Shown: positions 41,659-49,641 of the stretch, one piece after another
Layout: the number at the start of each line of letters is the position of its first letter
Numbering within the stretch: the first letter of the stretch is position 1
Source of the DNA: Epithemia pelagica
Lineage: Eukaryota; Protista; Bacillariophyta
Length of the DNA: 64,000 nt
NCBI GenBank assembly: GCA_946965045.2
Contig: OX337237.1
Coordinates: forward strand, 2,480,001-2,544,000
Direction: 5' to 3'
Made by a program: the position numbers and the translations under genes
Notes under the pieces: model-generated
What the model was told of the DNA's origin: nothing
The model's input: the letters and a program-made list of their open reading frames with translations, nothing else
The model's database searches: none

Positions 41659-43916
41659 TGGATTATCGAAGAGAATTGAAAACGAGTGGGATCATTGTAC
41701 AAGGGTCTTGCACAGGAGAAAGCAGACGGAAAATGAAGCCAGGATTGAAAAAGTCGCTCCAAGCCGATGAAAACGCGTACAAAGCCGTTTGGAGCGAAAG
41801 TAAGGACCGCGGCATTGCTTAGACAACACAGTAGAAAAGGGGTCTGGGCTGCTATATATTGCTGCAGCAACCGGAATGAAATTACTCTACGAAAAGCCAA
41901 TGATGGTTCTATTCCTAAAACTTAGATCAAAGTGGTGGATTTTTAGTTTTTCAGAAGTCTAACAACTGGCAGTTTCTCCCTCGGTTACAAGTGATGTCGA
42001 TCTTTCCAGCTACTGCGGTAGGTAGGGGAATGTTTCATGGCCATTACGCAATCTTGAAGATGTATTTGTTTCTCGGAGATGGACAAAGCCTAGCCAACTC
42101 TCTTCTTACAATACGAGTAGAGTATACTAGTAGACATAGATTTGGGATCTTGTTCATGCACAGGAGAGACGAATACGAGTAATAACAACCAAAACTGAAA
42201 CGCCAGGAGATCGTGGGACCGTCGGCCTTGTGAGTAGGGCAGAGCTGGATTAATGGTTTCAAAGTCCACAAAATGCCATGGATACTCCCATTGTTCGATG
42301 GTGTTCAGTATATCGTCCTTGTCTATAGCAACTTATCCTCCTCCTACAAGCGCATGTCGGCTGCGTAGTAAAGTTTTTGTTCTTGTTTGTCTCCTGGACT
42401 TGGTACCAAAGGCGTTGCGACCTAGTCATACCCTGCTTCTCTTTTTTCGCGACAAAGTCGTGGCCATTGGCGTCGTTGATACCCAAATCGATCGCATCGA
42501 GATTTTCTATAAAGTACCACTGCTTTTCAATGAAGACTTTGACCTGTTTGGAGATAACAGAATGAAGACTTTGACCTGTTTGGAGGTAACAGTCCATAAA
42601 TCCACAGCTGGTCATTGATTTGATGAGTTCCCGATTGGTACATCCATGTCCTTATCAAGATAACCGACGGTAGGTCCACTCTAGGGTTAGCTTCATCCCA
42701 GCACTCCTGAAACCCTGATATCAAAGTGTCTTTGTTTCCGTTGACGTTTATATCTGTGAAGTCGTTCGTTGCGCAAGGATCGAATCTGTAATCACATGAA
42801 CGACATTGTGTGCCGATGGGTGGAGCGATATGAGACACTTGGCGATTACCACCTTCAGCCTCGTGGGTGGATTCCCGATCGAACCGAGCCCATCAATAAA
42901 CTGCACTTTCGAAGGTAGTGGCTTCTTCTTTTGGATTCTCAATCGTTGGAGGGAAAGTGAATTCTTCCTCATTTCGCAAAGCCATCAACGTCCAAATGCT
43001 GCACCAACATCTCGCCCTTGTCGACGATCAGTTGACTTGGCGCTGGATCCATCTCTAACGACAGTGATCCTTCACCGTAGGAGGGAAAGCTCGCTTTAAA
43101 GAGGTGTGCATTCAAATTGGGAATTTGCGTATTGATTCTAGCCTTACCGGGTAGGACTAGCCTTGCCTTGATGCGATCGAAACAGTTTGGTTGCGAGGCT
43201 GAACCAAATGCTTGTTCAAGTACATACTTCGGAAAAGCGACATCTCGAATATAGGGAACATACGTTGAACGAATTGACTTCTTGTTTTCCCCAATATGCT
43301 TGCGTCAACGTCTTGATGTTGTTCTCCTGTTGGTATTGAGGCTGACGAGTCCCAAGACTTTGCCTTGACTTCCAACACATGCAACTCATACCCGATAGTG
43401 TTGTCATTGCGGCGAATCGGCACCTTTCTCAAAATATCAGCGCGAACAAGAAGCGGCCCTGAGCCTTCCAAAAGCACCCTCTGGTGACGATGACTCTTGC
43501 GTTAGCAGTGACGTTGTCTCTGTGGCCATATCTTCCAACGATGTTTGATCAGCTTCCCATGCCGACTGTAGAGACCAACCTCATGCCATTTTTGATTGAT
43601 CAATTAGGTTATGGGTTTCGTTTCAAGTGTCCTTCGGGCGGTAACTATTACCCCCAAGCCACAGTGAGTTTTCGGTCGCTCGTAATTTCATTTTGAAACA
43701 TAAAAATAACGGCCTTCACGATTACCCAAGACGCTAGGGAGTATGTTTACGTGTCGCCTCACCCCTTACCCCTTACCCTAACCGAACAATCACAATGTCT
43801 GCCATTTGTGGTCAGTGGTCTGGTCGCGTTTGGAGTCATGTCCCCCCACAAAACAAGAAAAATCGACGCTAACAAGAAAAAATGAATTTCTTTTTTCATG
43901 TCAAATACTCCTATGC

Positions 43917-46900
43917 ATGACTGCAGCCATGGCCAACGGAACCGTTCCCCATGCACCCTATTACGATGATCGAAGGGCTAGCAGAGACGACAACGATGAG
44001 GAGTTTCGGACCATTTATATTGAACTGATGCGCGTCCTTCATGTCATGGAGCAAGAGTTCAACAACAGCCATGACGCTCACCACCCTCCAACCATTGCCT
44101 CAAAGAGTCACCCGTCCTCATGGTATCCTGCCCGAATCCACTATTGCCGGTCTCTTTGCCACCAACTCCAACAACTTGATGTACAAAAGAATGGGTCGTG
44201 GACACGAACTGTGGCATCCGTACAAGAGAGAGTGGAAGCCGTCTGCCGACAATCGGAAGAGCAACTACTCCTGGGAGAGTCCACCACCCAAGGACGAGCA
44301 GCAACCAACGCTATGACTGATTCCAACCAAATCCTACGACAACTCTTGTATCCATCCAAGAGCGAGACAGGTCAGACAGCGGAGGAATCTCCTGTGTCAT
44401 CCATCCACCGAAGAGAAAGCTGGGATGACGGCGCCATGGCGACATCGTCTTCCAAGGACACGTATGAAAATGACAAGGAGACTGACGCTCCTCCTGCTGT
44501 GCACAGTAAGGAAGGAGAAAATGACGTGCCATCCATGGTGATAAGTCCGGAAGACCTTCAGGAACAGCAACGTGAACAAATGGAAGAAGCCATTCGTGCC
44601 ATGGCCTCGCAAATGAAACAGGAAACGGAGCGGATTCATCAAACATTGCGGAGTCAAGCCGCCAATCTGGACGAACTGGAACAAGTGACAACCGAAAATG
44701 TCGAGGCCGTTTCCCAAGTGGCGCAAGATGTTTCGGAACACGTACGACAAGGATGGACGAAATCCTTGGGAACCTGGACAATGCTCTTTGTTTTGGTGGG
44801 AGTCTTTGTGTTGACTCTACTCATCATTCTCATGGCACCCAAACGACGCGATGTACCCTGTTTCTTCTTTTTCTGTGATTCGTACTCGCATTCGACCGTT
44901 CCGGCACCTGCCACCAACAGTGATCAATTTTGTCGCATCTTACCCAATGGCGAACAAGAGTGCTTGGCGGGGGAATCCTTGGTCCGAGAAAAAGACCATA
45001 TGGACAAGGCTTTGCTGGATCACGACCGGATGGATCAGGACATTGACGATGAAAGCCAAGGCGAATCAAACTATGTGGAGGCGCGGAACAATGATGACGA
45101 TGAAAGGGCCAAACTGGATCGCTTGCTCGACGATAAAGATTGGAACGAGGAGACCGAAGAAGCAATAGACGATTCAGAGGGTTTAGATGAAAATAACAAA
45201 GATTATGAGACCGAATATGATGAAAATGACAAGGCTGAGCTAGATCGCTTGCTCGACCAAGACTTGAACGAGGAAAGCAAAGAAGAAGAAGACGATGACG
45301 ATTATTCAGAGTTTTCAAACCGTGCCGAAGAATATTGGTCGGAATATGATCCAAGTGACAAGGCCGAGCTGGATCGTTTACTCGACAAAGAATTGTACGG
45401 TGAGACCGAAGAAGAAGAAAAAGAGGAAGAAGTCGATCCAGATTTGTCAGACCATGATGAAGATTATGAATATGATCAGGATGACGAACTGGATCGTTTG
45501 CTCGATGAAAACTTGAATGGGGAAACAGAAGAAACAGAAAACGAAGCAGAGTTTTCAGACGAGAACGAAGATTATGAAGTGCAATATAGTCAAGATGACA
45601 AGGCCGAACTGGATCGCTTGCTTGATCAAGGCTTGGACCACGAAACAGAAGAAGCAGAAGATGAAACAGAAGAAGCAGACCAGCACGGAGGATATGAAGT
45701 GCAATATGATCAAGATGACAAGGCCGAACTGGATCGCTTGCTCGACGAGGAATTGAACGATGAGACCGAAGAAACAGAAAACGAAGCAGAGTTTTCAGAC
45801 GAGGAGGAAGATTATGAAACGCAAGATGAACAAGGCTCCGTCGAAGAGGACGTGAACGGTGAAACCGAGGACAATTCCGAGTTTTCGGACCATGACGAAG
45901 AAGATGTGGTGGAAAATGATGAAGATAGCAATGCTGAACTTGATGGCGTGGTCTACGAGAACTTGAACGATGAGACCGAAGACGCAGAAAACGACCATGA
46001 CCAAGACAATGAGTCGGAATATGATTCAGATGACAAGGCCGAACTGGATCGCTTGCTTGATGAGCAATTTAACGCTGAGACCGAAGAAGAAAAAGGCGAT
46101 CCAGCGTTGGTGGACCATGAGGGAGAACATGAGTCCGAATATGATCCAGCTGATAACGCCGAACTGGAGCAATCTGTTGACGAGGAACTGAACGATGAGA
46201 CTGAAGAAGAAAAAGACGATTCAGCGATGTCGGACCACGGAGAAGGAGATGATCAGCCAGCAAGCAACGGGGCTGGAGGAATGCTAGAGAACGAAGGGGT
46301 TGTCCCTCATGGAGATAAAGAAATGCGGACGGTTGAAATTGAAGATCATATTATGCCTCACAGCGAAGGCGATGGCATAGTATTGACAGAGGAGGTCGAA
46401 GTGGGAATGGATGGAGAATTGATTGATATGCCAACAAGGGCCATCTCGGAGAACGAGGTCATCTCGGAGACCGAAATGTCAGCAGTGAGAGATGAGGATC
46501 ACGATGTGGAAAGTGTGGATTCTCAAGATGACGAGTATTTCACTCAAGATGAGACCACGACTGAGCATATGGAAGCTTCTGCGATGGCGACGAATGGTGA
46601 AAGAGATGAGGAAACGACTAACTCAAATCATAACGATTCCATGGAGCAAGACAAAGAAGAGAGAACCGAACTGCATGAAGCAATTGGTCGTGATGGAGAG
46701 CATATTATTTATGAACGAAGCGACAATGACATGATTTTGACAGACGAAACAGACGTGGAAGTAGACAGAGAACCTGCTGATGATCCTAAAGCCTCTACAT
46801 ATGAAGATGAGGATGTTCAAGACCCCAAAGGCGAAGAAAAGCAAAAGAGCGATGAATATCAGAACGAAAATGACCATGATCTGTATGATGTGGATGCGAC

Positions 46901-47381
46901 TGCGGAAGAAGCGCACCAAGTACGAGAGGGAGTGATTGCAGATGACGACTCCAGAAATGAGAATACAACCCCCAACGATGATGAGAGCATAAGCGGGAAC
47001 GAACAGCAGAGCATGAACGCATCGAGTGAAGCCACGAACAGTGAGGACCCCGAAATGGATGCTTCGCCAGATGAGATTCCACTGTTTCGAAACAAGCCTT
47101 TCTCTCCCGAGGACGTTCGCAAAGCGGCGGCGTATGGTGACGTGGAATCTTTGGAAGGATATCTAAAGATTCGATCGGATTGGGGCCAAAGTGCGGATCA
47201 AAACGCATGGACAGCTTGGCATCTCGCAGCCCGAAGAGGCGACACAAATGCCATTGCGATATTGAAGAAAGCCTTTGGTGGCATTTCTACACTTAGAAGT
47301 GTAGATGGCCTTACTGCCCTTGATGTGGCTATCGGACACTGGGGAAGGGATCATGTGATCACGCAGATGCTGTCAAGTTGA
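43917..47381 (+). CDS. USE1-like SNARE/TM protein with long acidic-repeat region and C-terminal ankyrin repeats
   Basis: Coiled coil QREQMEEAIRAMASQMKQETERIHQTL...ENVEAVSQV followed by the TM segment WTMLFVLVGVFVLTLLIILMAP. About 9 repeats of YDxDDKAELDRLLDEELNxETEE. Ankyrin-like WTAWHLAARRGD and GLTALDVA. First true ATG at 43917. Confidence 0.75.
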   Translation: MTAAMANGTVPHAPYYDDRRASRDDNDEEFRTIYIELMRVLHVMEQEFNNSHDAHHPPTIASKSHPSSWYPARIHYCRSLCHQLQQLDVQKNGSWTRTVASVQERVEAVCRQSEEQLLLGESTTQGRAATNAMTDSNQILRQLLYPSKSETGQTAEESPVSSIHRRESWDDGAMATSSSKDTYENDKETDAPPAVHSKEGENDVPSMVISPEDLQEQQREQMEEAIRAMASQMKQETERIHQTLRSQAANLDELEQVTTENVEAVSQVAQDVSEHVRQGWTKSLGTWTMLFVLVGVFVLTLLIILMAPKRRDVPCFFFFCDSYSHSTVPAPATNSDQFCRILPNGEQECLAGESLVREKDHMDKALLDHDRMDQDIDDESQGESNYVEARNNDDDERAKLDRLLDDKDWNEETEEAIDDSEGLDENNKDYETEYDENDKAELDRLLDQDLNEESKEEEDDDDYSEFSNRAEEYWSEYDPSDKAELDRLLDKELYGETEEEEKEEEVDPDLSDHDEDYEYDQDDELDRLLDENLNGETEETENEAEFSDENEDYEVQYSQDDKAELDRLLDQGLDHETEEAEDETEEADQHGGYEVQYDQDDKAELDRLLDEELNDETEETENEAEFSDEEEDYETQDEQGSVEEDVNGETEDNSEFSDHDEEDVVENDEDSNAELDGVVYENLNDETEDAENDHDQDNESEYDSDDKAELDRLLDEQFNAETEEEKGDPALVDHEGEHESEYDPADNAELEQSVDEELNDETEEEKDDSAMSDHGEGDDQPASNGAGGMLENEGVVPHGDKEMRTVEIEDHIMPHSEGDGIVLTEEVEVGMDGELIDMPTRAISENEVISETEMSAVRDEDHDVESVDSQDDEYFTQDETTTEHMEASAMATNGERDEETTNSNHNDSMEQDKEERTELHEAIGRDGEHIIYERSDNDMILTDETDVEVDREPADDPKASTYEDEDVQDPKGEEKQKSDEYQNENDHDLYDVDATAEEAHQVREGVIADDDSRNENTTPNDDESISGNEQQSMNASSEATNSEDPEMDASPDEIPLFRNKPFSPEDVRKAAAYGDVESLEGYLKIRSDWGQSADQNAWTAWHLAARRGDTNAIAILKKAFGGISTLRSVDGLTALDVAIGHWGRDHVITQMLSS

Positions 47382-47698: not shown

Positions 47699-49641
47699 TT
47701 AATAGCGATATGTTTGTTCCAAAATATGATTGCTTCCGTCGCTGTCGCCTGTCGAGAAAAATGCCTCTTGCAACCGTCGACATTTGTTTGATAGAGATCC
47801 AAATGTCACTGAGAATACAAGGGAGATAAGAGCGGCTGCATAGAGTATGGATCGATTGGCAATGGCACGACGTCCTAGTAATAATGGTACTGCATTTGAC
47901 ACGAGGCCGTACACAGCCCCCATTGCACTCGTTGCCAAGGATATGGTAGACAAGCGTCCGAAACGTTGTTCCCAATTGGCCGCTTGTCGTCGTACCGCAT
48001 GACATTGAGGAGAAAACTTGCCGTGCGAATCCCAAATGGACATGGGTCGAACAGATGTACCAGGGGAACTTTGTGTTGAACGGTTGCCAGTCAAGGCATG
48101 CAAAGGAAAGGGTCCTCCATTACCAAATTTCTGCATCCAACGTTGCAAGGCGGCAACTCCTGCATCACTGGGTGTGACAACCAAATCATCCCACGAAGAT
48201 CACCGACCAGTGCGACTATCACCATATTCTTGTTGTCGTGCTGTCCAATCGGCTACTTTGCGTTCATCTTGTCCTTGCATTGTCCACATGTCTTGTTTTC
48301 CAAAGCGTACCCGGAAGTCCGACAAGAGAAGAAAAACGTGCAGCCAATTTCCCACCATTTGTCGTACCGAGGAGGGTAACAAAAGCCTTTGTACTCGATC
48401 CAGTCGCTTTAAAAAGGGCGAACTGGGGAGTTTAAAATAGCCATGGTGGTTGTCGTCGTGGGGGAATTGGGAACAAAGTACAGGCGAGCCGCAAACGCTC
48501 CGGGAGACGACACAACAGTGGTACAGGGAGGAATAAATTGTCGTGTCGACATGCTGGAAACGTTGGCGGGGGAATCCAGCTTGGATTTCATGTAGGGAGA
48601 ATGTTCGAGGGTAAAGCCTTCTTCTGGGATCAAGGAGGTATTGGTGATTTGATAAACTTGCATGGGTTGAGCATTCTCGGGGGAATAGGCCATTCCCGTT
48701 CCCGGTGCTTGAGTTCCTTCATGGACAAAGGGTGCATGAGAGGGATCCAAAGAGTTTTCCAACATGGACAAGTACGAAATCGGCCATGTAGAAAAGATCC
48801 AAACGAGAGTTGATGACTCCAATTCCTCTTGAGGAACGGCAGCATTTACCGGGATCTCGGGAAGACTCTTCGTGCTGGATGCTGACAGATAGAATGGATC
48901 CATAAACACCCATAGCATCCCACCGGATTCTCGCACTGGATACGATAACACTCGGATCCGACTCGTTGGACCACTGCTAGACTCGGAGCTAGGTGGTATC
49001 TGCATGGGTATTTTCGTGCAGGATCCTTGTGCATCATACTCCCATCCATGGTATCGACAGGCGAGCGAAGATTCTGACGATTCCGAGTCAGCATCTGGTG
49101 GCACTACCTTGCCAGTTGACAAGGGCGCTCTTCGATGGGGACAAGTGTCTTGCAACACAGAATATTGGTTGTCACTAGATTTCCACAAGACGAGCTTTTG
49201 ATCTAACATGTCAAAGGCGAGTGGCTTGGTTTCCAAATCCAGTCCCTTGGCATACGAAGCAGGCAGAATAGGATACCATTGCTGCGTCCAAACAAATTTG
49301 TTGTCGTCTTTTTCTGCCTCAAGGTTTGCATCCAAACCAGATTGTTGAGATTGTATGTTGATGGGTTCTTGAGGCTCAAAAGCAGCCGCATCGGCTGTTG
49401 GCCTGGTAACGGAAGGGATGGCGGTGAAAGGAGTACGAGTTTTCCCTTTTACCATGATACGTCCAGAGGATGTGCGCGAATCTGGACCACAGCGACCCCG
49501 AGAATCCCTTTCACAAAAAGAATCACTACAAGAACTGCGTGGAACCACAAAGCCAGTTACAACACAGAGAACCGAGCCGCTGCCAACAACGGCCAGAATA
49601 GCCAACGCTGCTGGTAGTTGCGCCAAGACTGAAGGATTCAT
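47699..49641 (-). pseudogene. Pheophorbide a oxygenase (PAO/TIC55)-like Rieske oxygenase, disrupted copy
   Basis: CPHRRAPLS, CRYHGW and ENSLDPSHAPFVHEG present. Two frameshifts (about 48440 and 48380), an in-frame TGA at about 48200 where the paralog has CGA, and CPQC changed to SPQC. Confidence 0.8.

Follow-up and report, generated by a model that had tools for sequence, protein, structure and literature searches.

A diatom Use1 SNARE with an 845-residue acidic, ankyrin-bearing and most likely lumenal tail

The 64,000-nucleotide stretch of Epithemia pelagica DNA analysed here, referred to below as the window (contig OX337237.1 of assembly GCA_946965045.2, positions 2,480,001 to 2,544,000), carries on its forward strand a gene for a protein in which the N-terminal part resembles the SNARE Use1 and the only transmembrane (TM) segment is followed by 845 amino acids (aa). 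Use1 is a Qc-SNARE through which COPI vesicles from the Golgi fuse with the endoplasmic reticulum (ER). The open reading frame (ORF) opens with the first ATG at 43917, runs for 1154 codons without an internal stop and closes with the TGA at 47379-47381; the closest upstream in-frame stop lies at 43779-43781. An earlier note, made from the nucleotide sequence alone, had listed a SNARE part, a TM segment, a cysteine motif, repeats, an acidic tract and ankyrins, and all of these elements were located where it had placed them. They are given below with the basis of each assignment, including structure prediction with AlphaFold2 (AF2) and its predicted local distance difference test score (pLDDT).

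43917..47381, forward strand: complete single-exon coding sequence of a Use1 Qc-SNARE with a long post-TM tail (1154 aa plus TGA)
43968..44309, forward strand: N-terminal three-helix domain, aa 18-131 (AF2; partly inside the Pfam Use1 match; family-conserved motifs)
44364..44513, forward strand: predicted disordered cytosolic linker, aa 150-199 (AF2 pLDDT <50; no conservation)
44571..44744, forward strand: SNARE motif, aa ~219-276 (AF2 helix; conserved residues)
44775..44843, forward strand: single TM helix, aa 287-307, and the invariant Pro-Lys at 308-309 (Kyte-Doolittle)
44859..44963, forward strand: juxtamembrane cysteine motif, C315-x4-C320 ... C339-x9-C349 (direct sequence reading)
45072..46247, forward strand: nine anchored and one degenerate acidic units of ~40 aa, aa 386-777 (Tandem Repeats Finder, TRF; unit alignment)
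46248..47060, forward strand: non-repetitive acidic tract, probably disordered, aa 778-1048 (32% Asp+Glu)
47061..47378, forward strand: three-ankyrin module with a short beta-hairpin cap, aa 1049-1154 (AF2, Foldseek, Pfam)

The suggestion of the earlier note that the N-terminal ~310 aa represent Use1 is borne out by profile searches. The Pfam Use1 model (PF09753) matches aa 75-304 with 37.5 bits when the whole protein is searched, just under the cut-off of 38.3, and reaches 42.3 bits both for aa 1-309 alone and in a six-frame search of the genome. In the latter search, which covered 60.5 Mb in 23 contigs, this was the only Use1 match, the runner-up having an E-value of 0.48. The same model also hits 79 of the 97 aligned relatives (best E 2.5e-15), and 22 of the 30 ESM-Atlas neighbour clusters of aa 1-330 are Use1 (score 0.94, 214 of 256 shared features). 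The gene hence appears to be the single Use1 orthologue of this diatom. AF2, run on the 97-sequence alignment of the N-terminal part, predicts N-domain helices at residues 18-52, 69-90 and 96-131, mostly with pLDDT >90, and one unbroken helix at aa 211-306 that leads from the SNARE motif into the TM segment. Residues conserved at 90% or more in the 97 sequences include Q215, Q218, M229, A230, K234, L244, Q247, L251 and N261. Hydrophobic heptad positions run from I226 to V272, with a polar 0-layer Gln upstream of the TM segment; the layers were assigned by hand, and Gln247 is the proposed 0-layer residue on this manual reading. Structure searches with the N-domain yielded no Foldseek hit at E<=0.001 and, with VIA, generic three-helix or spectrin/Habc-like bundles at Z <=10.8, where helical folds require about 13. 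No Use1 or other SNARE chain came up when the N-terminal part was searched as a sequence profile against the PDB, and these structure-based outcomes speak neither for nor against a Use1 identity. Six-frame genome searches also gave a Sec20-type match (30.8 bits) and a RINT1/TIP20-like match (29.4 bits); the Pfam models Syntaxin-18_N and Sec39 had no six-frame match, a result that does not show these partners to be absent. Overall, the protein shares with canonical Use1/Slt1/p31 (PF09753; Syntaxin-18/Ufe1-Sec20-Use1-Sec22 complex) the predicted helical N-domain, the disordered linker and the SNARE helix with a conserved Gln that runs into one TM segment. However, canonical Use1 is tail-anchored, the Pfam model stops at the TM segment and fungal clusters measure ~290-360 aa, whereas the window protein continues for 845 aa. 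The TM segment, which has no second Kyte-Doolittle peak beside it in the protein (maximum 3.09), lies far outside the final ~30-40 residues in which a tail-anchored protein would carry it; W287, P308 and K309 at its two ends are near-invariant in the relatives.

To what extent this architecture is shared can be judged from an exhaustive profile search, in which the Use1 part up to the Pro-Lys was used as the query against 1.84 billion cluster representatives (E<=0.001). The search matched 238 proteins, 150 of which were listed. The TM end was matched in 141 proteins, a set that comprises entries among the matches listed plus a few duplicates of the locus and its nearest relatives. In this set, the sequence beyond the TM segment has a median length of 415 aa (maximum 1092), and 126 proteins extend for >150 aa. 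With a hidden Markov model (HMM) built from 13 ankyrin modules, an ankyrin module of the same type was detected in 114 of the 126 long tails, as a single copy in 76 and in two to five copies in 38. This recurrence, which includes a transcript-derived ORF, upholds the view of the earlier note that the tail belongs to the Use1 protein. Nine of the 15 short-tailed entries end inside the region of the juxtamembrane cysteine motif, consistent with their being fragments. Across 73 full-length members, three parts are alignable, namely, the Use1 part, the Pro-Lys-Arg with the cysteine motif, and the ankyrin module with its P-[LV]-[FY]...P-F-S-P hairpin. Species names are attached to two members, namely, a 761-aa protein of Fragilariopsis cylindrus (OEU07203.1, ‘hypothetical protein’) and a model from the Thalassiosira antarctica MMETSP data; others are annotated as ‘ankyrin repeat protein’ only. 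Word-index protein searches with alignments returned four matches, and 22 mostly unrelated ankyrin matches, and it was the exhaustive profile search that brought the family to light. Within the genome of E. pelagica, the C-terminal extension is specific to Use1, given that each of the four Qb-type SNARE hits ends within ~20 aa of its TM segment. Taken together, these observations suggest that the tail is a family trait rather than an accident of one locus. Full-text searches gave nothing on this architecture, nor did a survey of SNARE structures (PMC11344281), although coverage of the subscription literature was partial; co-occurrence of Use1 and Ank would already be visible in domain databases.

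The integrity of the reading frame can be followed in several independent sequences. In a second assembly or allele of the same species (P0010, L004:3001-6636), the gene differs from window positions 43917-47381 by six substitutions, four of them non-synonymous, and by a 15-nucleotide in-frame insertion within the acidic repeats, after window nucleotide ~45406. Because the indel measures 15 nucleotides, the frame is kept, and the acidic repeat array is length-polymorphic. The closest relative, P0002 (45-50% identity), comes from another genome, where its ORF of 653 codons runs without interruption on a 739-kb contig, and P0007, from an MMETSP transcriptome, is a complete 928-aa ORF that combines Use1, one TM segment, an acidic linker and ankyrin repeats on a single mRNA. 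An open frame of 840 codons in register with a conserved terminal domain would be far beyond chance, and the Use1 part and the tail appear to constitute one gene product rather than a fusion artefact.

It might nevertheless be supposed that the cell makes mainly a canonical tail-anchored Use1, the transcript being spliced or polyadenylated early, beyond the TM segment, and that the long ORF is rarely or never translated whole. As a case in point, the T. antarctica model (P0101, 354 aa) stops 5 aa after the TM segment, which speaks for such a short product; in addition, the public gene model of the window locus (P0001) is mis-modelled at its 5′ end, with a misplaced start. However, P0101 matches a long relative right to its end, as is expected of a truncated contig: P0095 (960 aa), which is 69% identical to it, runs on into a 609-aa tail with one ankyrin module. 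Truncation of the contig is accordingly the likelier explanation of P0101, and a short isoform the less likely one. Furthermore, the ankyrin module is in frame with Use1 across 2.5 kb without a stop, both here and in more than 100 relatives, it has neither a paralogue nor a start of its own, and P0007 is complete at both ends. We thus regard a predominantly short product as very improbable.

Several kinds of evidence bear on the side of the membrane on which the tail resides. First, the SNARE helix must be cytosolic and runs into a single TM segment, which would put the tail on the lumenal side; a second hydrophobic segment is found in only two of 122 long tails. Second, and most telling, many of the relatives end in signals of the KDEL type. 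Fifteen of the 122 long-tailed relatives terminate in xDEL (RDEL in seven, HDEL and SDEL in two each, and KDEL, TDEL, LDEL and NDEL in one each), compared to 0.06 expected from the internal DEL frequency of the same tails (p~1e-31). More broadly, 39 of the 122 end in -EL, including ARSEL in six and xGEL, compared to 0.66 expected (p~4e-57). In a tree of the Use1 part, the xDEL and -EL endings are scattered over several deep branches. Such xDEL/xxEL termini are recognised in the lumen by the KDEL receptor and therefore argue for a lumenal tail. The genome of E. pelagica contains three KDEL-receptor genes (ER_lumen_recept; G000:C1:2883534-2883986, C2:2692098-2692589 and C1:5633551-5634036), one of which is canonical (178 bits) and two divergent (110-117 bits).

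A precedent is available in yeast. KDEL works on type II membrane proteins too, according to PMC2120279, and for yeast SEC20, a glycoprotein of the membrane, sorting is ascribed to the HDEL system (Sweet & Pelham 1992, as cited in PMC2120172). Sec20p, the partner Qb-SNARE, is a type II protein with a lumenal HDEL and in this respect is like the many Use1 relatives that end in RDEL, HDEL, KDEL or SDEL. It differs in being of the Qb type; the Qb-type SNAREs of the diatom itself are ordinary tail-anchored proteins, and the window copy of Use1 carries no xDEL. The lumenal part of Sec20p is short and without a folded domain.

The cysteines that follow the TM segment form another conserved element. 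A C-x3/4-C pair lies within 20 aa of the TM segment in 79 of the 122 relatives and is followed by a C-x8-10-C pair in 48, and an FCRxxxxGxxEC block is common to P0002-P0005. Conserved cysteine pairs beside the membrane fit an oxidising compartment, where the four-cysteine motif would probably be disulfide-bonded.

Several observations weigh against a lumenal tail, or at least do not favour it. The window copy ends in MLSS and its nearest relative, P0002, in ELSS, neither being a KDEL-type signal, so that the lumenal placement of the window copy is inferred from its relatives. Ankyrin repeats are usually cytosolic or nuclear. The flanks of the TM segment are about equally basic (mean charge +2.9 on the N-terminal side and +2.6 on the C-terminal side, with KRR after the TM segment of the window protein) and, owing to this symmetry, the positive-inside rule does not settle the orientation. 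The cysteines directly after the TM segment could serve as palmitoylation sites on the cytosolic face, and the core of the repeats conforms to the cytosolic sorting motif [DE]xxxL[LI]. The raw count of N-glycosylation sequons in the tail (3-4) carries no topology evidence.

If the segment did not span the membrane, or if the topology were unusual or dual, the ankyrin module and the nine [DE]xxxLL motifs might act in the cytosol, for instance, in adaptor binding, as would be normal for ankyrins and acidic dileucine motifs and compatible with the KRR and cysteines adjoining the TM segment and with the symmetric flank charges. Yet the xDEL/xxEL termini, which are enriched about 60- to 250-fold in the relatives, are meaningful in the lumen only, the cytosolic SNARE helix leads straight into a TM segment of ~21 residues, and 120 of the 122 tails are without a second hydrophobic segment. 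A cytosolic tail therefore seems highly unlikely. The earlier note had considered the tail lumenal by topology, and this placement emerges as most likely, with the enrichment of xDEL/xxEL in the relatives and the single-pass character of the proteins behind it; we hold it to be very probable for the family and a little less so for the window copy. The adaptor-binding, acidic dileucine reading of ELDRLL was set aside, given that the tail is most likely lumenal.

A lumenal tail does not by itself imply an intact protein. Soluble ER residents are typified by a C-terminal xDEL, which seems redundant on an anchored ER SNARE, and Pro-Lys-Arg/Lys is conserved directly after the TM segment, so that this segment might be a signal-anchor that is later cleaved, leaving a soluble, xDEL-retained acidic ankyrin protein in the ER lumen and a short SNARE stub. 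Against such processing, no cleavage motif was identified, the window copy is without xDEL, and yeast Sec20p is an intact membrane SNARE with HDEL. We consider cleavage improbable and retain the anchored type II protein as the preferred interpretation.

The tail of the window protein contains 299 Asp and Glu residues among its 845 aa (35%) and has a net charge of about -241. The earlier note had counted about nine Asp/Glu-rich units of ~40 aa at 45100-46210; 9-10 units are found, over nucleotides 45072-46247. Their core reads ...EYDxxDKAELDRLLDEELNxETEE..., Asp and Glu make up 46% of the repeat region, and TRF detects 120-nucleotide periods at 45485-45818 and 46009-46237 with 75-80% matches. 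The acidic tract that follows (aa 778-1048) has no Pfam match and shows no conservation in the relatives. Although the tails of the relatives are all acidic (median 22% Asp+Glu), the family maximum among them is 31%, which makes the window protein an outlier. The sequence of the linker is unrelated between lineages: ELDRLL-type 40-aa units are present here, DNPWG units in P0006 and P0007, and ~100-aa SFDDHPHPGTEED...SVSELE units in P0005, whereas the linker of P0002 is short and almost without repeats. The linker between the TM segment and the ankyrin module is a hot spot of repeat turnover, and the ELDRLL-type acidic repeats are lineage-specific. A related element is more widely distributed: the helix [KR]-x-[KR]-L-D-x-L-L occurs 25 times in 20 of the 122 tails, compared to 4.9 occurrences expected after shuffling, either between the TM segment and the ankyrin module or directly before the terminal xxEL. 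The window repeat core, K-A-E-L-D-R-L-L-D-E-E-L, resembles this LDxLL element and looks like an amplified form of it. As a side observation, most tyrosines of the repeat region and tail stand beside Asp or Glu (EYD, DYE, EYW), with 28 acid-adjacent motif matches for 25 Tyr, a Tyr with an acid on both sides being counted twice. Acid-flanked Tyr is the classical context of tyrosine O-sulfation in the secretory pathway, which we mention as an idea only.

The earlier note had suggested that the tail could be a high-capacity Ca2+- or polyamine-binding module coupled to vesicle fusion. In this reading, the acidic repeats would be what the tail chiefly works through, forming a high-capacity, low-affinity store of Ca2+ (or polyamines) in the ER lumen that is tied to the fusion machinery. 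The acidity of the repeats is comparable in composition to that of known lumenal Ca2+ buffers, the charge of the tail and the 46% acidic residues of its repeats are in line with this idea, its lumenal placement is supported, and acidity is common to the tails of all relatives. In particular, the window protein resembles calsequestrin and the C-domain of calreticulin in being a very acidic, low-complexity lumenal polypeptide, with KDEL-type ends in some relatives. However, there is no sequence or domain similarity to these proteins, and the window protein is membrane-anchored to a SNARE. Pfam reveals no similarity to any Ca2+-binding family, the matches being Use1 and Ank only; the repeat sequence is lineage-specific, with a short, non-repetitive linker in P0002 and unrelated repeats in other lineages; and the window protein is the acidity outlier of its family. 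Nor does anything tie the protein to silica or biomineral compartments, a link that the earlier note had contemplated. A dedicated cation store appears rather unlikely, whereas low-affinity cation binding as a secondary property of the acidic linker is plausible.

By contrast with the repeats, the cysteine motif and the ankyrin module are conserved family-wide, and the core function of the tail would for this reason probably reside there. The retrieval-type end is likewise among the conserved features of the family. In the window protein, Pfam Ank_2 matches aa 1070-1147 with 26.4 bits, slightly under the cut-off of 27.3, and the orthologues score 34.8-157 bits. AF2 on the alignment of the module (pLDDT 94.5, predicted template modelling score 0.84) gives a beta-hairpin followed by three helix pairs, and Foldseek retrieves three-repeat ankyrin proteins with template modelling scores of 0.72-0.76, root mean square deviations of 1.7-1.9 Å and 22-32% identity. 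Thus, in the predicted model, the C-terminal fold is confirmed as ankyrin. The fold matches include the C-terminal ankyrin domain of glutaminase (5U0I/5U0K), the designed 3ANK (1N0Q) and DARPins. These proteins are cytosolic, mitochondrial or designed, whereas the window module is predicted to be ER-lumenal and is preceded by the P-[LV]-[FY]-x-x-x-P-F-S-P hairpin; as a rule, ankyrin repeats are cytosolic or nuclear. In this genome, the module was found on the Use1 tail only, with no paralogue elsewhere and no separate start. Ankyrin-repeat proteins of the endomembrane system that are found diatom-wide are already known in the form of dAnk1-3, which are associated with the silica deposition vesicle, are without TM or targeting sequences and are predicted to be cytosolic (PMC9894196). 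Kinship with dAnk1-3 was rejected, since these are TM-less and cytosolic and the Use1 module is without a paralogue in the genome.

Downstream of the gene, a 410-aa ORF on the reverse strand (48409-49641) matches the Rieske [2Fe-2S] domain with 70 bits (PF00355) and, weakly, VanA_C; its product resembles a Rieske-type oxygenase with a hydrophobic N-terminus.

The explanation that we favour, and that we consider probable as a whole, is a single Use1 of type II topology with a lumenal acidic tail that carries a protein-binding ankyrin module. The N-terminal three-helix domain and the SNARE helix would remain in the cytosol and do the usual work of a SNARE, as homology and single-copy status suggest. 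One TM helix would span the membrane, and the other 845 residues would lie in the ER lumen, beginning with the cysteine motif and continuing as a hypervariable, very acidic and disordered linker, which in this lineage would have expanded to 9-10 tandem 40-aa units. The conserved three-ankyrin module would be the likely protein-binding end, directed at a lumenal partner. With 845 residues past the TM segment, the post-translational GET/TRC40 route would be closed, leaving co-translational insertion, presumably as a type II signal-anchor protein in keeping with established knowledge. The KDEL receptor would recognise the K/H/RDEL-like ends of many relatives in the manner of yeast Sec20p, and the window copy would have lost this retrieval end (MLSS). 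Protein binding through the ankyrins together with ER retention or retrieval is the most likely role of the tail. A more far-reaching variant is a two-sided SNARE, in which a multivalent lumenal system, with one to five ankyrin modules and one to nine LDxLL helices in an acidic disordered chain, would organise something inside the ER. Lumenal self-association might then cluster Use1 at sites of vesicle arrival, or fusion sites might be linked in the chloroplast ER to partners that are lumenal or face the periplastid space. We put this forward tentatively and regard it as doubtful.

SNAREs are textbook tail-anchored proteins, and both GET/TRC40 insertion and SNARE mechanics assume that almost nothing lies beyond the membrane. 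The Use1 of this algal clade, which in the genome studied here is the sole copy, carries hundreds of most likely lumenal residues, a folded ankyrin module and often an ER-retrieval signal. An essential SNARE has most likely been converted from a tail-anchored protein to a type II protein with lumenal ankyrin repeats, an architecture that is apparently undescribed. Such a conversion implies a different route of biogenesis for an essential SNARE and would put ankyrin repeats to work in the secretory lumen, which is rare. It may also provide a lumenal input into Golgi-to-ER fusion, or into the organisation of the ER in cells where the ER also wraps the plastid. If the two-sided interpretation were true, this Use1 would provide the first example of SNARE regulation from the lumenal side, and its ankyrin module that of a functional ankyrin domain in the ER lumen.

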